Positions 3,433-54,998 are shown, counted from the stretch's first letter. The stretch: 64,000 bases of DNA from Chara braunii (GCA_003427395.1 BFEA01000025.1:5201308-5265307); one strand, 5' to 3'. Made by a program: numbers and translations. Notes: generated by a model not told the origin, from the sequence alone.

Positions 3433-6400
3433 TTTTTTTTTTTTTGGAAACCGGGTCCAGCGTCCCATTATACATGAAAGGCACAGATTGCTTAGGATAC
3501 TCAGACTGCCAGCATTGACTACCCCAAGCAAAAGAACGGGGGGTTAACTGAGCAGCAAATAAGAGACATATATGTACATCAGCGGCGTCCTCCCCAGGGG
3601 GCTCCAGGGATGAGTTCCATATGTGGGCATCTATAGGTGTAAAGAATTGTACATAATTACTGTACATAATTATGTATATGTATGTGTGTATGCAGATGTA
3701 TGTGGATGTAACGGAGACCGGGTTAAGAATTTAACGTTCAGGACAGAATCTCTGCCAGAGAAAGGGCATGAGGTGGGAAGGGGTCTGGGAAGTCCGAGGG
3801 AGGGCGTAGTGGGAACGAGGGTTCTATGCTTGTCCAGTCTTTGAAAACTAGACTATAGTCTCTCATTTCTTCGAAATCCCGCAGTCCCTCTCCCCTATCT
3901 CCACTCCATTCTACTTTTGCAATCCATCCTTAATCCATCCTTCTCTCTCCCCTCCTACCCAGTCTGTGCAAAATGCTGTAATCCGTCTCCTAACATCTCC
4001 AATTTGTCTAAGAAGGTCTAATTGTGATTTTGTGTCTGACCATCTTTGTGTGAGTTCAAGATGCACCTGCTGCTGAATCTGTTCTGTAATCTCTAACCCC
4101 TCCACTCTTACCTTCTCCATGTCCAGGGTGCACCTCTGCCACCAAAGTGCCCATATCACCGCCCTCCTTCCCAATCTGTACATATTTTCTACGAAGGTCG
4201 TGGCTGTTCCTGCCAACGGCCAATGCCCAACCAATATGGCTTGCCATGACCAGGGCCAGGGGATGTCAAATTCCATTTTCCGCCATATGCGGTCCCACCA
4301 TCTCCATATGAATTGGGCAATCGGGCATTGCATGAAAATATGTTGAATGGTATCCGCCTTCTTATGGAAAGGGAAAAGACTCTGGCACCGCTGGCACCAT
4401 GGAAGCAGCAAACCTCTTTGTTCGAGGTTAGTACGGTCAGTCAACCAGTCGTTGGTTGGCAAACAACTGTGGGCAATCTGCCACTGTAGGGAGGTGATTT
4501 TCATGGGCTTAGATTTTTGTTCCTTTAACCATTGGATCGACAGGAGGGTGCGGTCCACATTGAGGTGTCTAGCCCATCTATCGTTAATCGCGTCTCTCAA
4601 ATGCCGTTTAGGTCTGAGCATTTTGTAGGCTGATTTGACCGACAACTGGTGCAGGCTAATTTGACCTACTTTGGGGGCTCCTCTCTTTTGGGGGGGATTC
4701 CATGTCCATTCTACCGGGTCCAGAGCCAGAGCCTGGATTGGTTTGAATGACTGGAACACCACCCTCTGTCCCTTCTCCTCTATAAATCTCACTCGGTGCA
4801 CTGCTGCTTTCTCTTTCCATTCGAAGGGTGCTCTATTCCCTTGGAGGGTGCCCAATTTGGTGATAGTGTAGTGTTCGATCAGGACTGTTTGGGGTGAGAC
4901 CATATGTATCTGGCCAATCCTCAGCGGGGTCTCTGTGCTTGCCACCAATCGCCTATTCTCAAGGTGGGGCCACGTTTACGAACTCGGTACCACTCCAGTG
5001 GGATGGCTTCAATAAGGTCATCCAAAAGCTCCTCTACATAATGGCAGTACCTTAGGGTTTCCTGCAATTGGTCTCCTGTTCTCCAGTCCTGTCTCTTGTT
5101 GTCCTAGAGATCCCCGACCCTAAGTACACCACGTTTAACCCAGTTTTTCCAGGGAAGGGATGAGCTTGTCATGATGCAACCTCTCAAATCTGTTACCCAT
5201 CGATTTCCAAAGAGGGGTTGTTGGTAGACTTCCTCCCAACGGTTGGGGTGGGTCCTGTTTGGGAGTGGAAGTTTACGCCAGGTTTCCAATAGAGATGGCC
5301 AAAAGTTGTCCATTGTTTGACCCCCGCCATCCAGCCCCTCCCTTCCTTGTGGGAGCTTACGTGGGATCGTCCAGAATCGGTCCTCCAGCCATGTCAACGG
5401 GTGGATTGTATGGGGGGTTGTCGGGGCCAGCCGGGCCAAATGTTCCAGAGCTAAAACACACCACGGGCTCTGGGGGCCGAAAATGAGCTTTTTAATCCAT
5501 TTTTACCGTAGTGCTTGCACCTGCGTGACTGGGTCAGTTATTCCCAGGCCTCCCCCCGCCTTAGGCTGGATAATTGAATCCCACGCCACTCGGCTAATTA
5601 CATTGGTCTGCTCGCCATCCCCCCTCCATAGGAAAGCCACTGCCTTTTTCCTTAAGCTCCTCAGGGGCGCTTTGCTCAATGGACACAGTAAAGACTTGTA
5701 CCATAATGTTGCAAATATTATGTTGTTAAGTACTAGTGTGCGGCCGAACAGGGGTGTGTGCTTGTTTCTCCAGTTGTTTAATTTATGCTGAGCCGGGGCA
5801 CTGATCCATTCGTCGTTGATTGGTGGTCATCCCTCCGTAGTCGTGGATACCCCTAGGATTCTTACTGGGGTCTCTAACGACATCCATGTAATGCGTGGTG
5901 ACTCTGGAGGGCGTCCCCCTTGATAGTGAATCCACCATCCTTGTGTCTTGGACCCCCAATTGACTGTCATGTCAGAAACCCTGACAAACTTTTCCATCAT
6001 TTGTTGAATTTCCTCCATGTTGCGGTGTGCGGCCTCTGCCATTATTGTGAGATCATCTGCAAATAGGGAGCACACCGGGATTGTGTCCTCCGGAATGCAT
6101 GTGACTCGGATTTTAGTAATATTTTTGTTTGCCCGAAGGTTGGCAGCTAGTGCCTCCATAATGACTAGGAAAAGGAAGGGGGCAATTGGGTCCCCCTGGC
6201 GGACCGACCGCTCTAAGTGTAGGGGCGGCACAAGGCATCCATTGACTTGGACGCATGTGGTTGCATTTTGGTGTAGGATTTGTATCCAGTGCCTGAAGTC
6301 CGGCCCAAAGTTAAATTTTTCCAGACATTTGTCCAGAAACAACCAGTCCACGTGATCATAGGCCTTTTCGAAGTCGATGAAAATTGAGGCTGCGTTTTGA

Positions 6401-7495
6401 CGAGAGTGTCTCGTGAGCTGGAGTATCTCATGCATCAACATGATGTTTTCTTGTATGTTCCTATTCTCCATGAAACCGGTTTGGGAGGGATGGATGATGT
6501 CTTCCGTTACTGGGATCATTCTGTTTGCTAAGGCTTTAAACAACATTTTGTACACTACTGTGAGGAGTGTTATTGGGCGGTAATTTCTGATATCCATCTT
6601 ATCCCCTTTTTTATATAGAAGGGTTAGTATCCCTCGCCCTACCCTTTCTCCCATCTCACCTGTGAGCCATACTTCATTGTAGAAGTCCATAACATCCTGG
6701 CTAAAAAAATCTCCTGTGGTTTCCCATAACTCCTTAGGGAAGCGGTCAATCCCTAGTGCCTTCTCCTCCTTCATTTGTAGGAGGGCGGTCCATATCTCTT
6801 GTTTAGAGAGTGGGGCCTCTAAGGATTCGCATTGTTCAGGTGTCAATGTTTTGTTTACCGCTTCCAAAAAATATTTTATTAGGTGATCGTAATATGGCGC
6901 ATCCGGCTTGTCCACATGAGAGGAAAACAAATCTTTGTAGAAATCGTATGTTATCTTAGTGCAACGGGGTATGGTCACGGTCGGGGCCAATTTCCTGACT
7001 TTCGGTTCGTAAAGTGCCTCGATCATGGTCCCTTGGATTCGTGTTCTGGCCAGGCTGAAGAAGTGAGAGTCCATCGCTCCTTCAGTGTAGAACCTGGATA
7101 GCCTTGCCCTTGTTTGGGCTCCCTGCCATTGATACTGTGCGTGCTTCAAAAGTTGGTCCTTCAAATCTTGTATGCGAGTTTGTAGTTCAAAGGTCCTTTG
7201 TTCCTACCCTTGCGAGTTTTGCTTCCGTTCTGTGTCCACAAGACTTTGCATAATCGTGATTTCTTGCTGGTATCGCTGTGCAACTAAATATTTGGAATAT
7301 TCTTTGCATTTTTTAGCCATAAAAAATGGTCCGTTGTTAAACCATGCGATTTGCGTTTTTTGTTGAGGGCGGTAGCCTTTGCAGAAGTCCCAAGCCTGCT
7401 GCAGCTATTTCTGGAAGGATTTTGATGGAAGCAGGGAGGTACTGAGTTTATAGTAGCTGGACTAATAGGCACATGGAGTCTTTCCTTCTCCCATC
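3433..7495 (-). mobile_element. 5'-truncated L1/Tx1-like LINE (ORF2 RT and C-terminal zinc finger), disrupted
   Basis: ORF 5827-7164 has YKKGD..NYRPITLL, IDFEKAYDHVDW, SVRQGDP and FADD. ORF 3911-4948 has CQRC...HIFMQC (zf-RVT). Poly(T) at 3433-3445. Stops and frameshifts lie between the ORFs. Confidence 0.93.
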
Positions 7496-9096: not shown

Positions 9097-9684
9097 AAGG
9101 CACCGTGTGACCCTTCTGCACCCTGCGCATCTTACTGGTCATAGCGAGATCCGTCAGGTCTCCACCGGTGAGCTCCATAGGAATATTTGACATCATTCGC
9201 TAAATTCTGTTGCTAACTTGCTAGTAAAGCAAATGGGTATGTACGAGCCTCTTCAGCGCTACCACGCACTTGTCTGCTGCCATGGCTACCAATCCATCCT
9301 CATCATGAGTGCATCAAGGCCAGAATGATAGCTTGTATACATTATTGATCAGGGTGCATTGGGGTTGGGGGGGGGGGGGGGTAGGGAAGAAGATGGTAGA
9401 GGTCATTGTTCCTGACAATGATCGAAAACCTTCTTTTGAGTTTAAAAACTTCTTTTTTCAGTTCTTTTTTTTTATAGTATGCGTATTCTTTCGGTGAGCA
9501 TCTCACAGTCGAGCAGAGTACACAGGTGTTCTGGATCCACTTTTGTCCTTTTTTTTTTTGTGTTAACATCTGGTTGCATCTGGGTAGTCGAAATCATTTG
9601 CATGACGATGTATATGATGTCTAATGTGGTTGAATTTCATGACAAGACTACTTGAGTGTGGTTCCCACTCTGTTCTACTGCATC

Positions 9685-9906: not shown

Positions 9907-10193
9907 ATCTATTGGCCAATGGTTTTGGATGAACTACAAGTCTCCTTCCACGTGGAGCCAAGACAGATACTTGATGCTGCTCCTTTAGGCAGAATCCCCG
10001 GTGGTATGGGTATGCACAATACACCCCCCTTGGACAAACATCTTGGTGGTGTTTGGCTGCCTGGGGCTATGCTCAATGCTGCAGAGTGTTGCTTGATGAA
10101 CGGCTCAGATGATCGCACAGCAATCGTCTGGCAGGATGAAGGGAGAGAGAACTTGCATAAAATGTCGCTGGCAGAGCTTCGCTCGCAGTGCAG
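9907..10193 (+). CDS. AAE17: Acyl-activating enzyme 17/18-like (AMP-binding family), internal exon
   Basis: AG/GT bounded. Encodes IYWPMVLDELQVSF...GGVWLPGAMLNAAECCL...AIVWQDEG...MSLAELR. Ends in phase 2, compatible with the next exon. Confidence 0.88.
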
Positions 10194-10629
10194 GTCAGTG
10201 GGAAGGATGTGCTGAGCCTTCCTTTCAACGGAAACCTTTCCCGTTGCCTACCTCTGTTTGTCTTCTCTTCTTCTTCTTTTTGGCCATTTCTTGTTCTTGC
10301 TGTGTGCCTACACCACCTCCTATTTCGCTTTATGTATGTATGACAGGTAGTCATTACACTTCGGGCACAATTTTCCGCGCTTTGTGATTACTCCATCTCC
10401 ACCGGCCTCAAATACTGAGAAGTATTCTCTCCCTCCTCCTTTCCTCCCTTCCTATAGAAAGAAGTTTGGAAGAGAAGGCAAGAATGCAATGCTAGTTGCT
10501 ACCGTGGCACCATTTCTTACCCTTTTTCTCTCTCCCCAGGTGTCGGCAGAATACGAATATGAGTTGCTCCCCATTCAAATTCTCCTGTTCCCCTGCCTCT
10601 TGTCCCCTCTTTCCTGATCTCTTCTGTCC

Positions 10630-10667
10630 CTGTCTCTTATACACATCTAGATGTGTATAAGAGACAG
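10630..10667. other. Nextera mate-pair junction adapter (assembly artefact)
   Basis: Exact CTGTCTCTTATACACATCT+AGATGTGTATAAGAGACAG (two Tn5 mosaic ends back to back) between two copies of an 81-bp segment. Confidence 0.98.
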
Positions 10668-10784
10668 GAATACGAATATGAGTTGCTCCCCATTCAAATT
10701 CTCCTGTTCCCCTGCCTCTTGTCCCCTCTTTCCTGATCTCTTCTGTCCTTCCCCTCCCTCCATCTCCCCCCCCTCTTCCTCCCT

Positions 10785-10815
<31 letters not shown>

Positions 10816-11138
10816 CCCCCCCCCCCCCCCCCCCCCCCAACCACCTCTCCTCCCATTTCTGATTCTTTTCTAGGCATCTTCTGGAAAAGGCTGGTAAGTA
10901 AGCCGTATGCTTAGTATGGGCAAAATGACATCATGAACGCTGGCGCTTGCATGAATGGACTACATGGATTGCTATGGAATACCTTTGCTTGGAAAGAAAT
11001 GAATGTTTTAATGAAATAAACTTTAATAAAGTGAATTCAATTGAATTCCTCATTGTGTAAAGAGAATCATCCAAGTGTGAAAATAAGTGAACAAGTGTTG
11101 GAATGACTCTTGTTTGCCTCTTGTTTGGCTTTGTTCAG

Positions 11139-11343
11139 CTCTGTGGCCTTTGCATTAAATGCAGCAGGTTTTCAGAAAGGAGATGCAGTTGCTATTAGCA
11201 TGCCCATGACAGTGCAATCAGTGGTCATATATCTTGGAGTCGTCCTTGCTGGGTGTGTAGTTGTGTCGATTCCAGACAGCCTCCCGGCTCACCAAATCGC
11301 AACACGTCTTAAGATCTCGGATGCGAAGGCCACATTCACTCAG
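11139..11343 (+). CDS. AAE17: AAE17/18-like exon
   Basis: AG/GT bounded, 205 nt (1+68 codons). Encodes [47 protein letters not shown]...[15 protein letters not shown]. Confidence 0.92.
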
Positions 11344-11434
11344 GTGGGTTATCAGCTTCTCACTTTTGCTCGACAAGCTCTGTCGACGTGAATCTGCACT
11401 CTCCGTGCTTTTTTTCCCGGGCACCATCTCCCCG

Positions 11435-11534
11435 GTCTTCACCCGAATAGAACATACGGTCGTTACAGCTGTATCTAGACTGAAGTTGGCCCAAATGCAG
11501 GTACAATTACTGCACGTTCTGTTCGGGTGAAGAC
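11435..11534. mobile_element. About 100-bp fold-back/MITE-like element
   Basis: Inverted arms GTCTTCACCCGAATAGAAC / GTTCTGTTCGGGTGAAGAC. A related inverted copy lies at about 41981-42083. Confidence 0.55.
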
Positions 11535-13736
11535 GGTAGCGAAGTTTAGGCCCCATATCCTACCTTCAGTGATAGTTAATGATCTTTCTGGTAATAGTTT
11601 AGTATTCCTTGTTGACATTTTCTTTCACATTCTTTTTGTTTATTTTGCTTCCCCGTACTTGTTGAGTATAGGCAAGCTGCAGTGTTACTCCCTGAGCTCA
11701 GTGACTGGGCTTGAATACATGAGGTCGTTGCTGTGTCAAACGCCTGGTTTGCAACTTTGCATTTATTTGTAAGTTATGTGATGAATACATAATAGACATG
11801 GTTGTGGCAGACCACGCCCAGGACTGTATCTCGATGCAGGACACCAGCCTGGCGGATTGGATCCGGTCATCTAGACAGATACGGACACAGGACACCAATC
11901 TGGATGGATACATAATAGACATGTTTGTGGTCCAACTCCGGACCTGTCTGGATCATGTGCACAGATGTGGAGTCTGTGGACATACCTCTCCGGATTCCTT
12001 TTTTTTTTTTCCATTTTTTTTTCGTTAAAAAACACGAGCTTTATATGTTATGAAAAATGACCGAGGCCGGGGTCCTCACAATTTAACCAGGGGTTATCCT
12101 GGGAGCAATACCCAGTTTAGCTTACGAGCATCTGCTCGCCCCAGATCTCCTTTGAAACTCTTATAACCCTCTGTGCGCCTCTCAGGTTTCTCCAGCTGTC
12201 AGATAATTATGAGACTCAAGAGCAGTGGGTTGAACCCCGGGGGTTCGTGTGTCACCATCCCTATTGTAAGTTGACCTGTTAAACCGCCAGTACCTTCCCC
12301 ATATGTCGGCCGTTGGCCCTGCTTGCCAAGTATTTGGGATGAATCTGGTCAGCGCGTGTGCCCGGGGACGGCCTCCATGTTAACCGGAGGGCAATTTTTG
12401 TTGCCTGGGAATGGTACTGGCGGTTTAAACCCCGCAGATCCCTTTGGCCCTCTCTGCTATGGCATACTAAGCTCTTAAACCCTGACCCCAGTACATGCAC
12501 AGTCCGTCTCCTTTTAGAACACCCTACCTCCTGCTGTACCCTATCCTTTCTTCTCTGTTTTTTAAGGAAGGAAATCTCTACACCCTATCTCTGGCAAATT
12601 GTGGCAATCCTCCGACCTCGATTGCGCCCGGATTCCTGTTCGGAATCTTCGGATATGAAACGAGAAAAAGAAAAGAAAAGAAAACCATTCTTTTTTTTAG
12701 TTGGAAAGGCCTGTGGGAAGTCGTGGAAGCAAGGTTGGGAGAGGTCTAGGAAAGGCCTGGGAAAGGTTTAAACGTTAAAGTTAAAACATTTAGAGGGGCG
12801 TACATCAGAGGGGGAGGCATGCTTGGGAAGTTGGGATGCCAAACAACGTACGTTGGAAAGAGTAAACTCGGCAAAGAATCGCACATTCCAAAGAATCACG
12901 AGTTCACAACTCAACGCAAACATAAGAAGGGTTGCCTAGGATAGCTGATGATGACAACAGAAATTAGGAAGGCTCCACTCTAGGTCTTACATTTCACAGT
13001 AAATGCAGAGCATTCATGACTTGTGGCTCCATGCCACGCTACCCTGCTACCTCACTGTGCATGTATGGACAATAGCCATTCCCACATATCTTTATACTTC
13101 CACGGCCTCACACACAACTCTCCTCATACCCCAGTTGAGGACTTGTGATAGAGCGGTGAGGTTCATTTTTTTTTTGACGTGCAAAATGGTGGCGATAAGT
13201 TAACGAAGTTCAAACAGGAATTGGAAAGTAAAGACGAGCCTATTACGAAAGGCCTACATGCGGCCCTGTTTCAACAGCAGACAGGGCCACTTTAAAAACG
13301 AGGCTGTGTTATTGCAGGGCAGCTCAGGGCATGAAAAAATGCTCTGGGCCTCCCAAAAGAAATTTCAGCCCATTCCAAGTGGGATCTGGACCCAGTATCT
13401 GGACACCGGACTCCAGTTGGTCCAGATAGCGATCCGGTCCGGATGTCTGGATCGCTATCACGGTCATAGATAATGTATTTTTTTCGGTAGCGATAACAGT
13501 TAATGTATTGTTTCAACCATCTTCTTTTTCCTTCTCCTCTCGTTTTTCTTCTTTTGTTTCGACCATGAGATGTCATCCGAATCTTGGTTTTGTTTCGTTT
13601 TTTTTTCAATACAAAAAACAGGTTTTTATTGTCATGGCTCCTTGTCCGAAGACATTTCTTGTTTGGGAGAAGTAAAAATATTATGAGCAGTTGGGAAATA
13701 GTGCCCAACCTGCCACTTTCATCTCGGCATGAACTA

Positions 13737-13915
13737 TTGTCTATGAGATCGGTACCATTGTCTATGAAATCGGTACCATTGTCTATAAAATCAGTACCAT
13801 CGTCTATGAAATGCATTGAAATCAATACCACAGTCTACGGAATCAGCACCCTTGTATATGGAATCGGTACCATTATCTATACAGTAAGTAGTAAGTACCC
13901 TTGTCTATGGAATTC
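13737..13915. repeat. Degenerate 21-bp minisatellite
   Basis: Unit about ATTGTCTATGAAATCGGTACC, with 3-4 good copies followed by decayed ones. Confidence 0.75.
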
Positions 13916-14721: not shown

Positions 14722-15735
14722 NNNNNNNNNNNNNNNNNNNNNNNNNNNNNNNNNNNNNNNNNNNNNNNNNNNNNNNNNNNNNNNNNNNNNNNNNNNNNNN
14801 NNNNNNNNNNNNNNNNNNNNNNNNNNNNNNNNNNNNNNNNNNNNNNNNNNNNNNNNNNNNNNNNNNNNNNNNNNNNNNNNNNNNNNNNNNNNNNNNNNNN
14901 NNNNNNNNNNNNNNNNNNNNNNNNNNNNNNNNNNNNNNNNNNNNNNNNNNNNNNNNNNNNNNNNNNNNNNNNNNNNNNNNNNNNNNNNNNNNNNNNNNNN
15001 NNNNNNNNNNNNNNNNNNNNNNNNNNNNNNNNNNNNNNNNNNNNNNNNNNNNNNNNNNNNNNNNNNNNNNNNNNNNNNNNNNNNNNNNNNNNNNNNNNNN
15101 NNNNNNNNNNNNNNNNNNNNNNNNNNNNNNNNNNNNNNNNNNNNNNNNNNNNNNNNNNNNNNNNNNNNNNNNNNNNNNNNNNNNNNNNNNNNNNNNNNNN
15201 NNNNNNNNNNNNNNNNNNNNNNNNNNNNNNNNNNNNNNNNNNNNNNNNNNNNNNNNNNNNNNNNNNNNNNNNNNNNNNNNNNNNNNNNNNNNNNNNNNNN
15301 NNNNNNNNNNNNNNNNNNNNNNNGTTTTTTTTTTTTTTTTTTCCCCGCCGCTGGGGGCCTTTTTGCACCCATTCTAGACTATCTAAACCACAGAAAACAA
15401 AATGTGGTTGGTAGGCCCGATTTCACCGATTTCGAATCGGGCCCGATTTGGATCTTCCATCTCAAAGATTGAGGGCCCAGATGGCCACGATTTCAAATCG
15501 GTGAGGGCGGGAACTACTGGCCCCCGTTCCCTCCCCCATACTCACGCTGTACCCCCAATATCCCCCCGTTCCTGCCCTGCAGTTGTGACACTCCGCCGGA
15601 CTTCGACGCGCAACTTCGATGAACCCCACCAGCACCTGCCAACGCCCGCCATCGCGCGTGACCCCGCCGTCACCCGCCAACGCCCGCCATCGCGGTTCTT
15701 CGCCATCGACAAGGTAAGGGACTTAGTTGGGAAGC

Positions 15736-15792
<57 letters not shown>

Positions 15793-15824
15793 TACATACA
15801 TAGATGGATACACACACACACACA

Positions 15825-15870
<46 letters not shown>

Positions 15871-15895
15871 AATACATATATAGGTATATGCATGC

Positions 15896-16003
15896 TCCTG
15901 ATGAGTCGGTGAAACTCCGACGAAACAGTTTGTCACAGCCCCTCGTTTGTTGTCCTCTTCTCTCTCTCTGCCTACGGTTTACCGGGCAGTTCTATTTGTG
16001 ACG
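15896..16003 (+). mobile_element. 108-bp insert with 20-bp TSD starting within a hammerhead ribozyme motif
   Basis: TSD ATATATAGGTATATGCATGC at 15876-15895 and 16004-16023. The insert starts TC-CTGATGA-GTCGG-TGAAACT-CCGAC-GAAAC and has no poly(A). Confidence 0.85.
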
Positions 16004-16714
16004 ATATATAGGTATATGCATGCACATGGTCCAACTAGTGGTTAAAATACAGCAACGTAGTAGCCACACGGGTGGACTCCCAGGTCCGTAGGGATACTAG
16101 AGTTAAAACATCTGGTACCCTTTCGACCCCCTGGACGCCAGACGAAGAATCATCTGGGCGTACCGACCTCAGTTTTACCGACTATTGGATAGACATTGCA
16201 CCAGGATGGGACTAAGCCACATATACACACGCACAGGAGCACTTAATATGGACCTGATTCGTAAAAGGCTACCAAGGCTTTCCTTGAAAAAGCGCCGCCG
16301 GCCTCCGCTAGCTCCAAGCAACCCCGCAAAAAGGACTTCAAATGCATGGGCCGTTTTTTCGTTTTCTTCGAACAGACAGGCAGTATTTGCACCGGGCTAG
16401 GACCATGGTACAGGTACCGATGGGTAATCTGGACCGATTGACAAACGGCTGTTCACCTGAACCCCGTTCCCGTAGTTTTTCGAAGAGAACACCCACGCGG
16501 CCCTTTCAACTTGGCCCGCCTCGAGAAGTGCTGCTATCCTCCACTATATTTACTGTCTGCGGGTTTATTCCCCCATCTCGTTCTTGGCTGAATGACTGTA
16601 CTGCTTTGTGCGGAGGCTCTTTGACGATTGCTGTGAATGCTTGGCCATGGCGACTTTGGACTTGGATGGTATCATGTATGCTGACCTCGCGGAGAACCAG
16701 AGCGACGAGGAAGC

Positions 16715-16864
16715 AGTACACCCCCCATCCCTCTCCCTACTAAGCCTTTACCTATGAAGGAAATGTTTGGAAGCTTGGACTGTTGTCGCAGTATACCCCC
16801 CATCCCTCTCCCTACTAAGCCTTTACCTATGAATGGAAATGTTTGGAAGCTTGGACTGTTGTCG
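16715..16864. repeat. About 75-bp tandem duplication
   Basis: CAGTA(C/T)ACCCCC...GGAAATGTTTGGAAGCTTGGACTGTTGTCG occurs twice with small differences. Confidence 0.85.
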
Positions 16865-16899
16865 CATGTGGTTTGCTGTGAACGCAGGTTTTCGAAGTA

Positions 16900-16947
16900 T
16901 CCCTCTGATGATCCGTATGGTGGCAACGGTGAAAAACGTTTTAGGGG
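16900..16947 (+). ncRNA. Minimal type I hammerhead ribozyme motif (slightly degenerate)
   Basis: Stem I TCCCT/AGGGG, core CTGATGA, stem II CCGT/ACGG with a T-T closing mismatch, GAA, palindromic stem III AAACGTTT, UUU cleavage triplet. Confidence 0.65.
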
Positions 16948-17155
16948 CGGCCACACCCTACCTGCATGCAGTTTGCGACTTGCTTCGTCACTTTCCTGCT
17001 GATTATTCAAGCGTCATCATTGAGCCTCTTCATCGTGCTGTGTCGACTGCTTGATATTCATCGTTCTTTTCATCTGGAAATCAGACTCGAGCTGTCCCGT
17101 AGTCGTCATTACCTGTATTTTTTATCATTTAGAGTAGTATCTCACACACACACAT

Positions 17156-17201
<46 letters not shown>

Positions 17202-17365
17202 ACACGCACACATATACAATTTCCCCTTTTCTTTAAATGCAGAAAAATAAAATTTAAAAGAATAAAAGCTGATAAATAATGAATTATAAATAAATAAATA
17301 AATAAAATAAAAAATAATAATAAAATAAAAAATAATAATAAAATAACAAACAAAATAATAAATAA

Positions 17366-17646
17366 CTAGGCTACCAGAGTGGCCCGGGGTCACTTGCCCG
17401 GCCGGGCCAAAAACAATTAAAAAATAAAAATAACAAATAAAAAATAAAAAATTTATTTTTTATTCTAAATTAGGTGTAGAATTTCGATGTGACCCTGAGG
17501 CAAAAGTTGATCCGTTTATTTTTCTGCATAACATAGTTTTTTTTTCGGATTTTTTTTTTTTTTTTTTTTTTTTTTTGGCTGGGACCTTCCCCGGTCCTTG
17601 CACGGGCTGCCCACCCGGGACCCGGGCGGCCCGGCTGGTAGCCTAG
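17366..17646. mobile_element. hAT-type MITE
   Basis: 12-bp TIR CTAGGCTACCAG/CTGGTAGCCTAG and 8-bp TSD ATAAATAA. An inverted sibling lies at 49635-49938. Confidence 0.9.
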
Positions 17647-19700
17647 ATAAATAAATAATAAAATTACAAAAATAATTTTATAGTAAAATAATAAAAAATT
17701 AAAATGCATATACTGCAGTACTTCAAAAATCAAAATCCCAACAAGAACTATTAAAAACTAAAACATGAAAAAACAAAAACTAAAGAGCAACATAATCAAC
17801 AAAATGTTTCAAAAAACATACCGTGTGTGTATGCCAGCAAAACTGGCAAGGTTCGGATGAAGGACCTACCCCTGTTGGGGTAGGTCCAACATCCTTGGAC
17901 CTACCCCACCAGGACCTTCATCACAACGGGAACGGGGAGGGACACACACACACACACACACACATATACATTTCCCTTCTCTTCAGATACAGAAAAATAA
18001 AAACTTAAAAGAATAAAAACTGATAAATAATGAATAAAAATTAAATTAATAAAATAATAAAACAATAAAATAAAATAAATAAATTAATAAATAAATAAAT
18101 TAATAAATAAATTAATTAAAAAAATAAAAAATAAAAAATAAAAAATAATTGTAAAATAACAAACAAAATAATAAATAGATAATAAAACTACAAAAAATAA
18201 TAATTAAAAAACAGTAAAATTAAAATAATAAAAATTGAAAATTGAAAAATAAATGCATATAAAAAAAAGTTGTAAAAGAGAAAGGCAATAATAATAAGTC
18301 AAAATATAATAGTACAAAAAGATAAGATAAGACAACCAGATACATATCAACAATCAGTACCTTCCCAATATAACGTAATTCGGCTAGACTAAAAGATATA
18401 ACAAAAATACGTAGGCACACTAAGCTCCATAATCGAGAATAATCATAAAAAAATAACCGAGATTAAATACCAGCAGGTGTATATATACAGATATACCCTC
18501 TCTACTGAGCGAACCCATTACCCATGCCGTAGCCCTCAATGAGCCATATGCAAACCTCCACTAGGAATTCGGAGCTCCTATCGGTAAAGCAAAACGACGC
18601 AGGCAACCTTTATCACCACATCAACTACAAAATTGCTGTCCGGTTATGGGTACACTTGCCTATGTATGAAACCGGAAATGCACACACATAACGAAAACAC
18701 CAAATCACTCACATCAAAATACGAAGGCCACGCGTTCTCACGAAAACGTACTAATGACCATTACGGAAACGACAAATAACTAAAAACACCACTCCGAAAC
18801 GACATAGACGATACACAAAAAACAAATACCCACGCCTACAGGACAAAACGGAATACGACGATACCCTGCGCCTCCATAGCCAGTCCTTCGCGCCAACAAC
18901 GAAAAAGACACACACAACTGCACATGATCGCGCGCAGCAAGTCAAGACAAGAAGACGAAACTACCCTGACCAAAACTAAGCTCGCACGCTAAGAGCTAAG
19001 ACCAAAGCCCGCCATCTGCTAAGTAACCTCCTGCAGCACATACTTTCGCAATATTGCAAACACTTGGGTGCAGACCCCCTTACCATACTGCAACTACACG
19101 GCTACCGCTACAGATCTCCTTTTGAAAAAACATTCCTACCCACTGGCGTGCACCCTCCACCATACACACATGGCACCATTACAACCCCGAAACTCAAAGC
19201 AATACTCATACACCCCCGTTATATCCCTGCTATTCGTAGCCCATATCATGGCTCGTTCTGCTATACATACATCACCCGCACGACCATATTCCCCCTCGTG
19301 CTACAGCATACGCCGTCGAACACGTCTACATATGCAACTGCATGCATGCTCGCGCTGCTGCATTGCGACGACAGCACATACACTACGACCCCCTGCACCA
19401 CGTAACACCAGTCCCCCCAGTATCTCTCGCTGAAGCACGACTGTTCAGCTGAGAATACAGTGTGTACCTGGGCGCGGCCGGTCGCAATACAGTGCATCGC
19501 ACGCTGTGCTTACACCATGAGTAACTGATACTTCGCTACGAAGGAGACACTCCTGCCATGGCGGCTGCTGACAATCCAGCGACACCGCCAATGACGACGC
19601 AGGTAAGACTCACTAACTCCATGTCCCTCAAAATGCCCACTATACCCCCCATTCCCTCTCTTCTCCTCCCCTTCCTAACAGGAGCATTTTTACTAAGCTA

Positions 19701-19756
19701 ACCCCTTTGATGAGCTGCTATGGGTGCTAGGCGGCGAAAAGCGCGCTTAAGGGCGT
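19701..19756 (+). ncRNA. Minimal type I hammerhead ribozyme motif (C3U variant)
   Basis: Stem I CCCT/AGGG (extendable past a bulge), core TTGATGA, stem II GCTGC/GCGGC, GAA, perfect palindromic stem III AAGCGCGCTT, UUA triplet. Confidence 0.72.
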
Positions 19757-20080
19757 GCACCTCCCATATGGTTGGGTCCTCCGACCCTCTCCTAACCCCT
19801 GCTAACTTACTAATACTAATTCTAACTGCTCCCCTCTAAAATCTACCCCTTGTTGTGTGAACCCTGTGTCGGACTAATATGATGGGCATAATGGCCGTCT
19901 ATTGTCCCATACTATTGGGATGGCTGTGTTCTATACACAAACCCCCCGCACACACGTGTAGTAGTGTATATTTCGATGTTCGAACGGAAGATTCATTCGA
20001 TTTTGCTCATCCTATCGATGGAAGTAGCGTGAGGCCAGCCGCGCGGTTAGCGACTTACCTGTCGGCCGGTGCGTTGCTCA

Positions 20081-20127
<47 letters not shown>

Positions 20128-20145
20128 CGGACGATGGATCGTCCG

Positions 20146-20194
<49 letters not shown>

Positions 20195-20534: not shown

Positions 20535-21200
20535 TGAAACGGTTTTCACCTTAGCAGTAGCAGATGCAGATCCCAGGGCTCGATCCCTAGACCTTACCAT
20601 ACCCGTGTACAATATCAAGTCGACCCCTGTGTGTTTGAACCCGTGACCTGTGTTTTGGTAGTTGACTGTTGCCTGTCGTAGGTCTGTGCAGCTGTAGGGG
20701 TTCGATCTGTAGGTCTGTCGACTAGGGGTTATAGTTGTGTAGAGGCCGTAGCTGTGGCAATTCTGAAAGGTCAAGGTCGTAGCTGCTACAGTCCGGAAAG
20801 GCCAAGTCCACAGACTTCCGGAAGGTCCGGAAGTGGCCTTTCGAGTTTGTCTCACTTTACTCACAGCAGACCAGAGGCAAGTGGGCAAGTGGTGAGTCCA
20901 ACTTCGCTTAGTCAAGGGTACTCAGTCCCAGTCTTACTTTGTACAGTCAGCAAGTACCATGAGGGACTGTGTGGACCATGGGCCTGGTGGAAAAGGGCAG
21001 ACCAGCGACTTACAGAAGTATAAAGCAAGAGGCAGCGTCCAGCCATTCATTCATTCCTGCTTGAGCCGGAAGCGCTGCCCAGGCGTCTTGTGCGAGGTGG
21101 TCTGCAGAAGCCCGAGGTTGAAGTGGGCTGAAGGGAGATAGTTCGTCCATAGCTGGTAGTGGTAGAGCGGCCATAGCCGCTGTAGCTTAGAGATAGAGTT

Positions 21201-21267
<67 letters not shown>

Positions 21268-21508
21268 GTATTGAGTTTGTGTGCGTGGGATATCCAGGGA
21301 GATCCAGAGTCAAGTGCGTGCAAACGGTTGTGTGATTACAGTGTCGGACAGAGGATGTGTGAGCGCTCAGGCGCCATAGCCAGTTGGAAGCAAGTTTGTA
21401 TCCAAACTGTGTTCTCGACTTTAATATCTCTGAGCTTTGTGTGGACTCACAGCGCCAGCGTGGATTGACATCTGTTTACATGTATGGGAAGTGAAGAAGA
21501 AAGCGAGT
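20535..21508 (+). repeat. 5' LTR (last ~9 nt and PBS not visible)
   Basis: Starts TGAAACGG, aligns to 28455-29423 and contains an internal (TG)n. Confidence 0.93.
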
Positions 21509-24699: not shown

Positions 24700-27600
24700 G
24701 GGTCGCAACTGCCCTTACCCCTAGACCATATGGAGAAGAGTGCGCGCACCACAGAGAAACTCCCAACCCACATGTGTCTATTGCAAAGGTTGCTGGCCAG
24801 TGCCTAGAAAGTTGTCAAGAGACTGCTTGTGTTAGGGTCTCTCTAGGCACTTCCCTCACAGGCGTGGCATAAGAATTGAAGGAGAGGATGCCTGCCTGGG
24901 CCAAGATGAAGAAGGATAGTAAAGGACAACTAGTCTTAGTAGATGTAGAAGTTTTTAGTGGCAGAGTAGGGGCCCTTATAGATAGTGGGGCAACTCGCAA
25001 CTATATTAGTATGAAAGCGCTGCAAAAGTTAAAGCTGAATCTAAAGGTCCAGAAGCTAGAAGACCCTATAGTCAGCACCCTCGCAGACAATCGCACTATC
25101 CGAGTCGAGGAATATGTAGAGGGAGTCCAGACGTACAATCGCCTAGAGAAGGATGGGAAGGTAGAGACAGTTCTCCATTCCCTGACTCTCCTCGTAGAAG
25201 ATAGCCTCCCATTTGACATGGTCCTAGGAATGGAATGGGGAGAGGTAGCAGGTGCCACACTACACTTGAGAGAGCACGAGTCTAGACTCCCTAGCCCATC
25301 AGGCGAAGTTAAGACTGCCCGCCTGTTTCATGTGTCAGGGGTAGACAACACCTTAGCATATTGCTGCCTCAGTGCTCCCGCGTTCGCGCGACTAGTGAGA
25401 AAGGAGCAACTAGAAGAACAGGTTTTCGTAGCCTATGTTAGGCCTGTCATTGAGCCTAAGGAAGAGAAACCATTGACCCAGTTATTGCCAAGTTGCTGGA
25501 AGAGTATACAAACTTAGCTAAGCCGCCTACATGAGTAGTGCAGCGGCCCATCCAGCATCGTATTGAGATAGAGCCTGGTAGTAGAACTCCTAAGGGAGCT
25601 ATCTACAAAATGTCCCCAAGGGAGTTAAAGGAGTTGCGCAAGCAGTTAGACGAGCTTTTCGAAAAGGGTTGGATTAAGCCCAGTTCGTCTCCTTTTGGAG
25701 AGCCTGTTCTGTTTGTCCCCAAGAAGGAGGGAAAGTTAAGAATGTGTATTGGCTATAGGGGTCTTAACGCCATCACAGTGAAGAATGCAGAACCACTGCC
25801 CCGTTAAGAATATGTATTGACTATAGGGGTCTTAACGCCATCACAGTGAAGAATGCAAAACCACTGCCCCGTATAGATGATTTGTTAGATCGGGTGCAGG
25901 GCTGCAAATATTTCTCTAAGATAGACTTGAAGTCAGACTATCATCATACAGAGGTCCATCCTAATGATCAGCACAAGACGGCGTTCAGGACTAGATATGG
26001 GCACTATGAGTTTATAGTGATGCCCTTTGGACTAACCAATGCGCCAACTACATTACAGCGTCGTATGAATGATCTGCTTAGGCCATGGTTAGATCGATTC
26101 GTGGTAGTGTACCTAGATGATATCCTAGTCTTTAGTAAGACCCTCCAGGAGCATGAGGGCCATCTGAGGCAGGTCTTGGAGAAGCTGAGAGAAGCTAACT
26201 TCAGGATCAACGCGAAGAAGTGTGAGTGGGCCAAGATGCAAGTCCTGTACTTGGGCCACATTTTAGATGGTGATGGCATAAAACCTAAGGACAATAAAAT
26301 AGCAGCGATTAGAGACTGGCCGACTCCCCGCACATTGACAGAGTTACGGTCGTTCTTAGGATTGGCCAATTACTACAGAAAGTTCGTCAGGATTTTTTTT
26401 ACCATCGCTGCTCCCCTTCGCAGGTTGCTAAAGAAAGAAGCAATCTGGAAATGGGATAGAGATTGTGCGTCGGCCCTAAAGAAGTTGAAGCGGGCCTTGA
26501 TAGAGCATCCAGTTCTCAAGGTAGCCGACCCATCATTACCTTTTGTTGTCACCACTGACGCAAGTCAGTACGGTATAGGTGTTGTTCTACAACAAGATGG
26601 TGGCAATGGGTATAGACCTGTAGAGTTCATGTCTGCCAATGCCTTCAGAGAAGGTAGCGACATCTACCTATGAGAGGGAACTCTACGCTCTCAGGCAAGC
26701 ACTAGACCACTGGAAGCACTACTTGCTTGGGAGACTCTTCAAAATGTATTCAGACCACAAGACGTTGAGGTGGTTGAAGACGCAGGCCAAGATGACACCT
26801 AAGCTGACTAGGTGGGCCGCAAAAATAGACCAATTTGACTTCGAACTCAAGCCAGTCAAAGGGAAGTATAATGTAGTTGCGGAGAGCTGATTACTTTGGA
26901 GTGATAGTTCACTATCTGGATGTAGGGCGAGACCTGCAGCAGAAAGTTAAAGAAGCCTATGCACATGACCCTATTCATAGTGATCCCTTCAAGAGAGTTA
27001 AAGAGTCTCTAGATTCTGAGCCAGACTACCGTACTACAGATGGGCTGTTATTCGAGAAGACTAATGTAGCGGATCGATTGTGCGTTCCCAACAGTGAACA
27101 AATCCGAAGTCTGATCTTGGGGGAATGCCATGATACAGAGGGACATTTTGGGTGGCAAAAGACATTAGCCAACCTCATGCGCGCGTATACTTGGCCTGGC
27201 ATGAAGGCTGACTGCATAGAGTATGTACGCAGTTGTAAGGTGTGCCAGCGAAATAAGACCACTACTTGAGCCCCTCTTGGTCTTCTCAGGCCCTTGCCTA
27301 TTCCCGATGCGACCGGAGACTCTGTATCCATTGATTTCATGGATGTTGGGGTCAGGAGTAGGCATGGCAAGAGCCAAGTCATGGTGATAGTTGATAGATT
27401 TAGTAAGTATGCATTATTTGTTCCTTTGCCTTCTGAGACACGTACAGATTTAGTGATACAAAAGTTCTTCGATTATTGCGTCAGTGACCATGGGCTACCG
27501 CTGTCTATAGTTAGCGACAGAGATACCCGGTTCACTAGTCAGAACTGGCAGGAACTAATGAGTGTATAACTCTAAGTTGATGATGTCATCTGGCCATCAC

Positions 27601-29432: not shown

Positions 29433-29613
29433 TCCCCCGAGGTCCCCTGGTTCCTGCCCTACAGTTGTCTCGCTCCGCCGGACTTCAACGCGCAACTTCG
29501 ACGAACCCCGCCAACACCTGCCAACGCCCACCATCACGCGTGACCCCGCCGTCGCCTGCCAATGCCCGCAATCGCGGTTCTCCGCCATCGAGAAGGTAAG
29601 GGGCCTAGTTGGG

Positions 29614-29683
<70 letters not shown>

Positions 29684-29686
29684 GCA

Positions 29687-29753
<67 letters not shown>

Positions 29754-30057
29754 GTGCGCGTGTAGTAGTGTATATTTCAATGTTCTAGCGGTAGATTCGT
29801 TCGATTTTGCTCATCCTATCGATGGAAGTGCTCTCTCTCTCTCTCTCACACACACACACAGTCATGCTTTTTTTTAGTGTATAGCGAATATGACAACACA
29901 CACACACACACGCACACACGTGTAGTAGTGGATATTTTGATGTTCTAGTGGAAGATTCATTCAATTTTGCTCATCCTATCGATGGAAGTAGCGTGAGGCC
30001 AGCCGCGAGGTTAGAGACTTAGGTTAGAGACTTACCTGTTGGCCGGTGCGTTGCTCA

Positions 30058-30124
<67 letters not shown>

Positions 30125-30168
30125 AGCAGATGCTCTCTCTCTCTCTCTCAACAGATGATGGATCGTCC

Positions 30169-30229
<61 letters not shown>

Positions 30230-30473
30230 AGCGTTCACATTTTTATTGCAGATTCGGGGTCCTCTACGGTAGCGCAGCAAAACCCCGGCTTCACCAAAAA
30301 AAAAAAAAATTCCCTGCTGGGTTTTGGGGCCGCCTGGATTTCCCGGGCGGACCCCCCCGGGCCTGCCCGGCCGGGGGCCGCCTGGCCAGGCGGCGGCCTA
30401 GCCTAGAAAGAAAGAAAGGGGAAGAAAAAAAGAAGAAAATAGAAAAAACAAAGATAGAAAAAAAGAAGAGAAC

Positions 30474-33253
30474 ATGTTCGCGGACGATCTAACGGTCCTA
30501 ATCAGAGCGTCTGACTCCTCATTCAGGACACTAGCTAAAGCAATGGAAGCGTTCAGACTAGCCTCAGAAATGAAGATCAATTGGGGAAAAACAATTGGCT
30601 GGTGGCTATCCGAGGAAGAGCCCCTTTCACTCCAAGGCGACGAGGCGGCTATGACATGGCAAACGTCGGACACACCCACCCGCTATTTGGGCATACTAAT
30701 GACAAAGGAAGGAATGGCTCCCCAAATGGGCCCATCCATGCTGGCCAAACAGATCAATAAAATCGGAAGGTGGGGCAATGCCTTCACGTCCCTTATTGGT
30801 CGAGCGCCAGTCCTCAATACATCGGTCTTTTCAATGATGTGGTACATAGCCTCCATTTGGACAGTCCCGGGCAGCTCGGTTAAGGAGCTGAACCGAAGAG
30901 CTAGGCTTTATCTATGGACAGGAGACCCCAACAAGGACAAGGGCATATCTAAGATTGCCTGGCACTATGTTACAAGAAGGCCACAAAACGGAGGCCTAGG
31001 AATTATTGACCCCGGAACAGAAACGAAAGCCCTGCAAGTCAAATGGATCATCAAACTGCTGATGAAGCCGGACAGCGCCTGGAATAATCTGGCACTGGAT
31101 AGTATCAGATCCGTGGCCCCAGTTCTCTCCCCGGACAATATGTCAGGTCTGTTTTGGGTAATGAAAAAAGAATGGGTGATAACCACAGGACGTAGGAATC
31201 GAACGAGGAATAACAGACTCGATGACGGTTGACCACCCACGCCTTACTGGCCGGCACTACTCCGATCCTGGAGGAAAATATTTCCCAATAAGATAAACAG
31301 ACCCAAATCCAAGGATGAATTACTAAGGCAACCGCTCTTCGGGAATGAATGGATAACAAACGAGGCGGACAACCCACTCTTCCTAGAACAGAGGTGGTTG
31401 TCCTGGATCAAGAACGACATCTGGAAAGTTGACCACTTATGGAAGGAGGATAAAAAGGGCTGGATAACGGAACAAGAAGTCAGCTCCTGACTGAAAGGAT
31501 GCCACAGACGAGGGACCATTCTCCAGTATATACTTAGCTGTATCCCGCAGGAATGGACAGATATCCTGGTAAAAGATGAATCGTGGAGACCGGGTGAGTG
31601 GGGACTTATGATTCAAGATGTAACCCCCTCTAGAGCCTTTCAATTCTCCCATTTGCGCAAGGCTCACACACTAGGGCCACTTTCCTCTCTTTCCCGATTT
31701 CCCTCACCAATACTGGTACGCCAACTATCTTGAACTGCGATGTAGAGTTGCCAGTCTTAGAATCCTTCCTGCTCCGGAAAGTAAGGGTCCTAGGGGCATG
31801 GCCAAAGTCAGTCTTCAGACCTGACACTACAATCCGTAGCTTGGAGTTCGATCCAGCGGAATGGGCGTGGACGCCAAATAGGGCCAGCAACATTAAGACC
31901 AAAATTCCAATCCAGGATTACACAGTCAAACTTGGGTACAGACTGTCTCTAAAGACCAAAAATCCAGACCCTATTATCAAAAACAGATGGCGGAACCTCG
32001 TCAGGCAGGAAGCAGACAACATCACACGAATCCACTGGGAAAAATTCAAACGCATCAGACCAATCAAGACTAGACGTTTGCAGTGGCTGATTGCGTACGC
32101 AGCCCTACCGGTGAACCAATGGCTACACACTAGGCGGAAAGCCGCAGACCTCAACAGCTCGGAGTTATGTACAGTCTGCACCGAAGGCCCTGTAGAAGAT
32201 ATAGTTCACTGCCTAGTGCTTTGTAAAGAGGCTACTGAATACTGGGCAAGAGCTTCATCACTCTGGGACTCCCTCTTCACATCTCCCTTCCCCGATCAAC
32301 CCATTCAACTTCTCCTCTTGACTAACATCCCTGATCAGGCGCAAAAGGCAGAAAGGATCTGGTTTGAACTCATCAGGAAAGTGACCCTATGGGTCATATG
32401 GAAGGAGAGATGCAGCAGGACAATTGAAGGGCGGTCTAACCCACGGGAGAAGGTGTGGATAGAAACCAGAACATTGATACAAGCTGAGATCCTCTGCAGA
32501 TGGCGGAAGACCAAACAAGCTTGGACAGAAGATGAAGAGCAGCGTAACAAGGAGAGGCAGAGATTCTACAGGAATTGGCTGATAAATGGCAAGATTGCAG
32601 AATTGCGAGAGGACCGGGTATGCTGGAAGGAGTGGCACAATTCAGTACCAGAAAGAGGCTTTCACCAGCAGGCAACGTCTGAGGGCATATTCGCATCCTA
32701 GGCCTCAATCGAATGTAAGCGGCCCCTCAGGGGCCCAGGGGGTACGAACAAAGAGGAAATATGGGAGAGAGAAGGACAAGTTAGAGTAGGTGAAAATACG
32801 GGAGCATGAACGCGGGTTACAAAGGAAGGCTTTATCGCAGGGGGCCGGAAGCAATGCCTGCCAATGTCCAAGATCGACAATTGGAGGTTGGGCGCACAGG
32901 CGAGGGGTTTAGGGTTTAGGGTTTTATCGTAGATCTTCCAAAGGGGCAGGGAGGTGTGTGGGGAGGAAACAGGTCGGCAAGGATAACGGATGAGCTCTTT
33001 CTAGGGACAATGGCGCTATCTGGCAGACCTGGACTCCAGGTCTGAGAGGAAAGAGAGGGATAGGGCAAGCTGACAGTCAATCCTCCACCGCGGTGGAGCA
33101 ATCAATGCTGTTCAGGGATCCTTCGGCCTGACGGAAGGAAGCGTGTGTGAGTGTTCTTGATGTAATGTATATTTTGACTTGCCGGTGGAATAGGAACCGG
33201 ACTGACGCTCCCCAGAATAGGAACCAGGACCATTAAAAAAAAAAAAAAAAAAG
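30474..33253 (+). mobile_element. 5'-truncated L1/Tx1-like LINE
   Basis: Begins at FADD of RT. Contains GGLGIID and zf-RVT CTVC...HCLVLC, then a 3'UTR with the conserved terminal motif and poly(A) at 33235-33253. Confidence 0.93.
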
Positions 33254-54987: not shown

Positions 54988-54998
54988 CATCATCAGTT

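Follow-up and report, generated by a model that had tools for sequence, protein, structure and literature searches.

Penelope-like elements (PLEs) of the Chlamys clade insert at (CA)n and (C)n, are frequently truncated at their 5' ends and lie beside inverted, 5'-truncated neighbours (Craig, Yushenova, Rodriguez, Arkhipova 2021, PMC8557442); the same study lists the head-to-head, inverted and truncated arrangement as typical of PLEs. The clade reaches very high copy number in the stonewort alga Chara braunii (PMC8557442), from which Chlamys-2_cBra, having a canonical 3' hammerhead and an open reading frame (ORF) with a zf-CCHC domain, has been described (Craig et al. 2021, PMC8557442). Cervera and de la Pena (2014, PMC4209133) describe the hammerheads of PLEs as type I ribozymes in which helix III has 1-2 bp and a palindromic loop, a design proposed to work as a dimer. 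Animal retrozymes without long terminal repeats (LTRs) have been interpreted as derived from PLEs (Cervera and de la Pena 2020, PMC7229834; Li, Clavereau, Pollet 2026, bioRxiv 10.64898/2026.07.22.740005). Here we analyse a window of 64,000 nucleotides of C. braunii DNA (GCA_003427395.1, BFEA01000025.1:5201308-5265307; positions are counted from its first letter), in which an insert of about 4 kb bears hammerhead-like motifs at 15.9, 16.9 and 19.7 kb (motifs 1, 2 and 3). We consider it probable that its 4.08 kb are a stack of dead, truncated copies of Chlamys-2-type PLEs in one (CA)n tract, together with a nested short retroposon, A1, and a miniature inverted-repeat transposable element (MITE). 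Hammerhead-bearing Chlamys PLEs that target (CA)n in this alga are an already published kind (Craig et al. 2021, PMC8557442), and motifs 2 and 3 are decayed members of it.

Self-BLAST of the window delineates two copies of the flanking sequence. Positions 15552-15863, comprising an exon-like piece, (CT)n and (CA)n, correspond to 29434-29739, and 19935-20193 correspond to 29898-30217; the gap between these matches is about 4.08 kb in copy 1 (15868-19948) versus 158 bp in copy 2. Further comparisons were made with a sample of 334 kb of C. braunii DNA that includes the loci designated here by L-numbers other than the metagenome contigs L001 and L002, the fetched algal loci all coming from GCA_003427395.1; the C. 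braunii genome is roughly 2 Gb. The original prediction, made from the window alone, had described two copies of a host repeat, one with some 4 kb of extra DNA. The geometry holds, but "host repeat" is a loose term, as the flanking pieces W (from 19956; 19956-20080) and Y (20535-21508) are dispersed repeats that recur on five or more other scaffolds. Copies of W occur in L004, L008, L009 and L010, with (CA)n preceding W at every left flank read (both window copies and L008 50171), and copies of Y, at 71-75% identity, occur at L004 43802-44774 and at L008 8263-8920 and 50919-51574. Nor is copy 2 the plain (CA)n tract that had been supposed: its spacer (29740-29897) contains part of W in duplicate (29759-29829) and, with (CA)n on both sides, a 3' tail of 37 bp that derives from a hammerhead retroposon of the subfamily termed A3 below (29860-29896, + strand). 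This tail shows 91-94% identity to those of A3 at L003 31195-31238 and at L008 50614-50657 and 50883-50918. The "empty" site has therefore also received an insertion.

The landing pad of copy 1 opens, after the exon-like segment and (CT)n, with a (CA)n tract (15769-15867) that matches 29688-29739 of copy 2. It is followed by element B (15868-17142, + strand), a non-coding, PLE-like 3' fragment absent from copy 2, whose 5' limit is uncertain and which measures about 1.14 kb after subtraction of a nested insert and one copy of its target-site duplication (TSD); B terminates in GAGTAGTATCT, and (CA)n follows immediately (17143-17211). The nested insert, A1, is a short retroposon of 108 bp (15896-16003, + strand) that begins inside stem I of a type III hammerhead, ends in TTTGTGACG, and is framed by a TA-rich TSD of 20 bp whose left copy (15876-15895) and right copy (16004-16023) are perfect repeats of one another. 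Beyond the second (CA)n lies the A-rich piece C1 (17212-17822, + strand), split by a hAT-like MITE (17366-17646) having terminal inverted repeats CTAGGCTACCAG and an 8-bp TSD ATAAATAA. The MITE, a later and unrelated insertion, has an inverted copy at 49634-49938 (- strand) and many copies in L004, and its family is also represented in the A-rich 3' region of the L010 PLE described below (L010 5179-5290). Piece X (17823-17940), 118 bp that form an imperfect hairpin from GATGAAGGACCT to AGGACCTTCATC, separates C1 from another (CA)n tract (17942-17963), behind which stands the non-coding element C2-D (17964-19948, + strand), of about 1.98 kb, whose 3' end is homologous to that of the L010 PLE. 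C2-D is A-rich, then A/C-rich, and continues into a hammerhead and a 200-nt tail ending in AAACCCCCCG; CACACAC (19949-19955), a (CA)n remnant, leads from there into repeat W. The first part of C1, about 155 nt, is shared with C2 at 83% identity (17207-17363 versus 17959-18112), and both pieces start at the same base after (CA)n, opening directly with ATATACA(A)TTTCCC.

The pieces of the insert have neither poly(A) nor LTRs, and no ORF in it matches Pfam (the four longest were searched), in agreement with the original prediction of inserts devoid of poly(A), LTR ends and recognisable ORFs. Within 15868-19948 there is no tandem array, and no long direct repeat other than the 20-bp TSD bounds any piece. 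Element B and the heads of C1 and C2 have no other copy in the 334 kb, where piece X likewise matches only itself. At least four insertion events, those of B, D, A1 and the MITE, are certain.

An autonomous relative of the type I pair is L010, a near-complete PLE lying on the same strand as its hammerhead. Its ORF1 encodes a zinc knuckle (Pfam zf-CCHC, 27 bits). The next ORF contains FYIGKT, and its homologues P0143 and P0146 (C. braunii-type, 1,279-1,344 aa) carry zf-CCHC and, over the aligned stretch, Pfam GIY-YIG; pieces resembling reverse transcriptase (RT) read CPC, LDKNPG, GVPMG..SSSP and RLVDD. The GIY-YIG and RT pieces of L010 themselves have no Pfam match and drew blanks in PDB sequence searches, and the GIY-YIG assignment is based on the homologues and on motifs read by eye. 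Downstream of the RT follow an assembly gap, about 1.9 kb of non-coding sequence that is A-rich and then A/C-rich, and a short ATG-started ORF with a GT donor-like end. The hammerhead beyond is canonical, comprising CCCT, CUGAUGA, a 5-bp stem II, GAAA, the palindromic helix III AAGCGCGGTT and AGGG, with the G10.1-C11.1 pair present. The 3' end of L010 adjoins (CA)n some 211-215 nt past the predicted cut site. This succession of a zf-CCHC ORF1, a GIY-YIG/RT ORF and a hammerhead near the 3' end agrees with the architecture that Craig et al. report for Chlamys-2_cBra from the same host, the comparison being with the published description rather than with the consensus sequence. A GIY-YIG/RT element such as the original prediction invoked, outside the window, for mobilisation in trans is present in the genome, with a matching 3' hammerhead.

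The last 440 nt of element D are homologous to the 3' end of L010, and the parts of the element follow the order seen there. Positions 19504-19945 align with L010 6756-7242 at 65% identity over 494 nt (E=2e-41), rising to 70.6% in the inner 265 nt (19675-19939). An ATG mini-ORF in D (19558-19608, + strand) ends in the splice-donor-like GCAG/GTAAGA and has its counterpart at L010 6812-6866; the mini-ORF and its GCAG/GTAAG-like donor, situated about 100-120 nt upstream of the type I hammerhead, are conserved between the two elements, and the counterpart in B, upstream of its hammerhead (16647-16718, + strand, read from sequence; equivalent to 19558-19603 of D), lacks the GT. Similarity of B to L010 is confined to the hammerhead region, where 16899-16958 are 72% identical to that of L010 over 60 nt (E=1e-4). 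Homology of the 3' end to an autonomous member, as in the Chlamys clade, accordingly extends over 494 nt for D and only over these 60 nt for B. When B (16024-17142) is aligned with D (17966-19934), the best local alignment comprises exactly the two motifs (z=5.5).

Both motifs are of the type I, PLE kind. Motif 2 (16901-16947, + strand), matched by our descriptor and aligning with motif 3 and the L010 hammerhead, is degenerate: it has stem I CCCT/AGGG, the core CUGAUGA with C3 present, and the helix III palindrome AAACGTTT, and carries a U.U mismatch at 10.1/11.1 (16912/16930). Motif 3 (19703-19753, + strand) is also a descriptor match and has the same stem I, a 5-bp stem II, the helix III palindrome AAGCGCGCTT and the G10.1-C11.1 pair, and bears U in place of the invariant C3 (TTGATGA at 19707), where the L010 copy has the canonical CUGAUGA. 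The predicted cuts, after 16942 and after 19749, fall 200 nt from the 3' end of B and 199 nt from that of D. Like the described PLE ribozymes, these motifs leave stem I open and place a helix III of only 2 bp within a palindrome of 8-10 nt, a short palindromic helix that implies action as a dimer; motif 3 and L010 also have the G10.1-C11.1 pair of those ribozymes, where motif 2 has U.U. They differ in a stem I of only 4-5 bp, in a stem II with a long loop of 9-12 nt and in belonging to a Chlamys element of the green lineage rather than an animal PLE; the invariant core with C3-G8 is kept at C3 in motif 2 and L010 and not in motif 3 (U3). Mutation of C3 abolishes cleavage in a PLE hammerhead, the change tested being C3G and not C3U (PMC11167929). 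From motif 2 to motif 3 and L010, a U-A pair of stem II becomes C-G and the U.U mismatch becomes G-C, and helix III stays palindromic in a different sequence (AAACGTTT versus AAGCGCGCTT). Coming from three sequences only, these changes are suggestive and not statistical.

The RT with an N-terminal GIY-YIG nuclease and a CxC linker that marks the Chlamys clade is encoded in neither B nor D, and no Penelope-like ORF occurs in the window. As such an ORF is absent here and present in the homologous L010, B and D are fragments or passengers, not autonomous members. In our preferred reading, of stacked and truncated PLE copies, B and C2-D are probably the 3' portions of two different Chlamys-2-type PLE families. 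For the piece at 19.7 kb, and probably for that at 16.9 kb, the simplest view is of a PLE that lost its 5' part and not of a dedicated non-autonomous element. Their insertion in (CA)n, hence without a readable TSD, their 5' truncation and their lack of poly(A) are features of Chlamys PLEs; they depart from that pattern in that the window has non-coding 3' fragments only, from two families and with both hammerheads mutated, and autonomous masters were not found in the sample. No pseudo-LTR (pLTR) or partial tandem, adjacent inverted 5'-truncated copy or "tail" of 30-40 bp accompanies B or D in the window. To judge from published PLE biology, the N-terminal GIY-YIG nuclease would nick a simple-repeat target, here (CA)n, and the RT would copy the element RNA from near its 3' end, mostly aborting and so leaving 3' fragments such as B and D. 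A type I hammerhead whose very short helix III lies in a palindrome would cut only as a paired dimer, for example in tandem read-through transcripts. The inventory of pieces, their homologies and termini, the target sites and the ribozyme defects are direct observations; the order of events and the part that self-cleavage may play in setting 5' ends are, like this mechanism, what we infer.

Several observations weigh against this interpretation. B is alone of its kind in the sample and resembles a PLE only across the 60 nt of its hammerhead region, so that architecture is the basis of its assignment. Outside its last 440 nt, D does not align with the 3' region of L010, with which its composition and order of parts agree. 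Rfam misses the type I motif at E<=10 even in the canonical form of L010. In the in vitro experiments of Frangieh et al. 2024 (PMC11167929), PLE insertion did not require cleavage by the hammerhead, and none of the reads stopped at its cut site. The common 5' end of C1 and C2, finally, is not predicted by random 5' truncation; it may be either the defined 5' end of a non-autonomous element or the product of a local duplication. That C1 and C2-D might instead be minus-strand elements sharing a 3' end at (TG)n was considered and rejected, the homologous region of L010 being on the same strand as its RT ORF.

The alternative that survives best, though we think it unlikely, is that B and C2-D are dedicated non-autonomous ribozyme retroelements, each having its own 5' end (at ATATACATTTCCC in C2-D) and a 3' module common to autonomous PLEs, and that they are copied in trans. 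Such elements would account for the identical opening of C1 and C2 right after (CA)n, for 1.98 kb without an ORF that matches Pfam, and for an alignment with L010 limited to the last 440 nt, and they have a precedent in the non-autonomous Chlamys elements of Chlamydomonas, which share 3' ends with autonomous ones (PMC8557442). L010, however, has at least 1.9 kb of non-coding sequence, A-rich and then A/C-rich, between RT and hammerhead, so that a 5'-truncated copy of an autonomous element would look alike; the stretch of L010 that could hold the same 5' motif is an assembly gap, and the sample yielded no further copies by which to define termini. What the original prediction said of non-autonomous ribozyme retroelements is upheld for hammerhead-bearing, poly(A)-less pieces of the Penelope-like world, and their dedicated non-autonomous status is unproven, given the equally long non-coding 3' region of L010.

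We regard as less probable still that the 4 kb arrived in one or two events, through a complex PLE insertion or a local duplication of "(CA)n + C", with the internal (CA)n tracts as junction products. Complex tandem and inverted insertions are known for PLEs (PMC8557442), C1 and C2 with the (CA)n preceding them are 83% alike, and, W and Y being dispersed repeats, the whole locus is built of repeats. But B and D resemble one another in the hammerhead alone, at about 70% identity, which is too little for copies of a single element; the separate TSDs of A1 (20 bp) and the MITE (8 bp) make at least four events certain, and an independent A3 tail occupies the same tract of copy 2.

It could also be asked whether the motifs have to do with ribozymes at all, or whether repeat-rich DNA has produced CUGAUGA...GAAA by coincidence. 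At the gathering threshold, Rfam reports only U6 in the window and no hammerhead. With permissive settings motif 1 matches Hammerhead_3 at 20.2 bits (E=1.3), short of the gathering score of 48.5 bits, and motifs 2 and 3 match nothing at E<=10; a hammerhead search of the kind proposed with the original prediction yields from Rfam a weak hit to one motif of the insert, and it is our own descriptors that recover the type I pair. The combination of CUGANGA, a stem II of at least 4 bp and GAAA occurs twice in the window against 0.11 expected, and a relaxed form four times against 0.58. A descriptor of the complete type I motif, which demands the core, stem II, H17, 4 bp or more in stem I and, as helix III, a palindrome from A15.1 to U16.1, matches only at 16905, 19707 and L010:6983 when both strands of the 334 kb are scanned, and has no match in 40 dinucleotide shuffles of all 334 kb. 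Minimum free energy (MFE) folding returns the hammerhead fold for none of the motifs; for a fourth motif, at 54.9 kb, that fold has -17.4 kcal/mol versus an MFE of -20.2, or 2.8 above an alternative hairpin. The hammerhead motifs exceed chance expectation. Absent or weak Rfam matches and a defect at a conserved position in each motif speak for coincidence, a notion already contradicted, and to our minds very improbable, given the empty shuffles, the complete or canonical homologues of motifs 1 and 3 elsewhere in the genome and a best alignment of B with D that is exactly the motif. The predicted positions and strand are confirmed, all three motifs lying on the + strand and each being separated by 78-200 nt from an end of an insert, next to which comes a TSD or (CA)n; beyond chance as their cores are, none is intact as a ribozyme, motif 1 being partial, motif 2 having the U.U mismatch and motif 3 having U3.

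The two ribozyme types foreseen are both present, type I with palindromic helix III at 16.9 and 19.7 kb and type III at 15.9 and 54.9 kb. The type III motifs belong to a family of short elements, family A, of which the 334 kb contain 19 copies or fragments in three subfamilies, A1, A2 and A3. Motif 1 (15898-15931, + strand) consists of the core, stem II and the 3' strand of stem III; its CUGANGA ... GAAA core (15898-15925) is shared with the 54.9-kb motif. It lacks the 5' strand of stem III, the cleavage site and half of stem I, so the 108-bp copy cannot self-cleave, and the three helices that define the type III family Rfam RF00008, with an open helix III bearing the NUH cleavage site, are absent in it and present at 54929-54986. 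That complete hammerhead (+ strand; Hammerhead_3, 42.9 bits, E=1.9e-7 at 54930-54985, below the gathering score of 48.5) pairs 7 of 8 bp in stem III, 4 bp in stem I and 5 bp in stem II, has an intact core, and would be cut at GUC after 54937; motif 1 is 93% identical over 41 nt to its 54949-54989 portion. Complete motifs are found in the longer copies, at L006 1080-1381 and 1572-1770, at 54.9 kb in the window and at L011 22147-22202 (46.0 bits), with a stem III of eight positions, stems I and II of 4 and 5 bp, and GUC or GUU as the site of cleavage.

A1 has six relatives in all. Four of them, of 103-108 nt, are 96-99% identical (L004 23815-23922, 23983-24090 and, on the - strand, 9023-8921; L006 1666-1768); the others are L006 1278-1379 (93%) and a 5'-truncated copy of 73 nt at L004 9036-9108. 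Of five relatives ending in ...TTTG(TG)AC(G), four are located in (TA)n. The L004 copies at 23815 and 23983 form a near-tandem pair with type III motifs, and at L004 8910-9110 and L006 1036-1381 a copy stands head-to-head with an inverted, more truncated one. A3 elements end in ATATGACAA and are located in (CA)n (L003 31236, followed by (CA)35; two copies in L008; L011 17287-17377; window 29860-29896). The A2 element with the fourth motif (54125-54998, + strand; about 870 bp) begins right after (AC)6, and matches L011 21329-22131 at 84.6% over 824 nt (from 54142-54962) and L011 22143-22215 at 97% (from 54926-54998). This copy begins with CAATCAGTTTTAT and ends with CATCATCAGTT, its ends overlapping by about 7 nt of the same unit as if from roughly one turn of a head-to-tail or circular template; its homologue in L011 extends past that end, and L011 22084-22179 is a 48-bp tandem duplication of the 5' half of the ribozyme.

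Nine short copies of family A begin 2-12 nt 3' of the predicted cut site, and the A1 insert of the window begins 11 nt 3' of the cut predicted for the family. This clustering suggests either the 3' product of self-cleavage or stalling of the RT; the RNA that gave rise to the A1 insert may already have been self-cut, or the RT may have stalled at the terminal stem I hairpin. In being short and non-coding, in bearing a hammerhead, and in inserting at microsatellites in head-to-tail and head-to-head groups, family A resembles MRC1 of Chlamydomonas reinhardtii (PMC8557442) and the animal non-LTR retrozymes. It differs from them in that its ribozyme is type III, the kind of viroids and plant retrozymes, and not type I, and in showing no similarity to the sampled PLE 3' ends, its tails matching no PLE 3' region in L010, L011 or L012; nor does 15868-19948 contain head-to-tail arrays such as characterise animal non-LTR retrozymes, in which every unit measures about 170-400 nt and carries a type I hammerhead. 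With the plant LTR retrozymes (Cervera et al. 2016, PMC4918200) it has in common the type III hammerhead, a non-autonomous and non-coding make-up and the green lineage, and in contrast to them it has no LTRs, primer-binding site or polypurine tract, and shows insertion resembling target-primed reverse transcription, a long TSD and 5' truncation. That the inserts are themselves plant-type retrozymes, LTR-bounded, with type III hammerheads in the LTRs and mobilised by Gypsy elements, is scarcely credible, for although the 15.9- and 54.9-kb family has the right ribozyme type, it has no LTRs or long direct repeats, a TSD of 20 bp, variable 5' truncation, inverted head-to-head partners and a microsatellite location.

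With regard to target sites, the prediction of (CA)n targeting applies to part of the material. Both ends of each large piece, B and C2-D, adjoin (CA)n, as does the 3' end of L010; the type III insert of 108 bp went instead into TA-rich sequence at the 5' edge of piece B, and its closest relatives are in (TA)n. The 20-bp repeat around it can be recognised as a genuine target duplication from the unrelated (TA)n sequences that flank other members of the family; the same different flanks rule out that the repeat is part of a 128-bp tandem of 1.16 units. The 54.9-kb element had been thought to end in (CA)n; the short (AC)6 (54113-54124) touches its 5' end and not its 3' end. Enrichment next to microsatellites, likewise expected, is borne out: by our own classification, 17 of 19 elements lie with one end or both no more than 15 bp from a (CA) or (TA) tract of five units or longer, against 1.5% of sampled positions. 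The nominal P value exaggerates the effect, since neighbouring copies are not independent, but the microsatellite bias is plain, and agrees with the literature.

The locus offers a compact example of microsatellite-targeted insertion by Chlamys-type PLEs, a single (CA)n tract having taken up at least two PLE fragments and its sister copy a third hammerhead element, and the stacked insertions support the published idea that Chlamys nucleases recognise simple repeats. It also shows that the retroelements of a single alga carry hammerheads of two distinct structural types. The short type III retroposon family was not found in the literature searched, and merits a genome-wide description. Tentatively, and with more doubt than confidence, we suggest that family A represents a non-LTR "retrozyme" lineage of streptophyte algae that uses PLE enzymes and in which self-cleavage sets the 5' end of the RNA before reverse transcription; if true, it would link the plant LTR retrozymes (type III) with the animal PLE-derived retrozymes (type I). 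A weaker idea concerns the type I ribozymes: that of the Chlamys-2-type PLEs may lie in an intron after a conserved ATG mini-exon, such that splicing and self-cleavage compete, and the intron may belong to a transcript starting in an upstream repeat.

Further hammerhead-like sequences were encountered outside the window. A second Chlamys-type PLE, in L011 (10001-13758 overall; ORFs 10001-10906 and 10912-13758), is preceded by a type I hammerhead that can be read by eye at 9324-9382, about 650 nt upstream of its ORF1. Stem I of this motif has 5 bp, stem II is bulged and the palindrome is ACGCGT; it has no match to Rfam Hammerhead_1 at E<=0.5. A scan of metagenomes with the exact pattern of the type III core and stem II retrieved only two contigs and no algal copies. 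In these contigs (L001 8195-8223, - strand; L002 3461-3489, + strand) an intergenic type III hammerhead is identical to motif 1 in core and stem II over 29 nt, a likeness that is probably convergence on a favoured stem II and loop; their ORFs are densely packed on one strand, and our guess is that they are phage.

Other features of the window include a near-perfect hairpin in both flank copies (20083-20193 and 30060-30230), made up of (CT)n, an 11-nt arm with its inverted copy and (AG)n, which draws strong but spurious matches to microRNA families in Rfam. A U6 small nuclear RNA gene lies at 666-766 (103 bits, Rfam) and marks the window as eukaryotic. ORFs of the long interspersed nuclear element (LINE) type (RVT_1 and zf-RVT) and the Ty3/Gypsy type (RVT_1 and RNase H) are found at 3911-7164 (- strand) and at 25846-26673, 31730-32701 and 45185-48202 (+ strand); the best matches of the LINE RT ORF are C. 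braunii proteins, at 66% and 58% identity.

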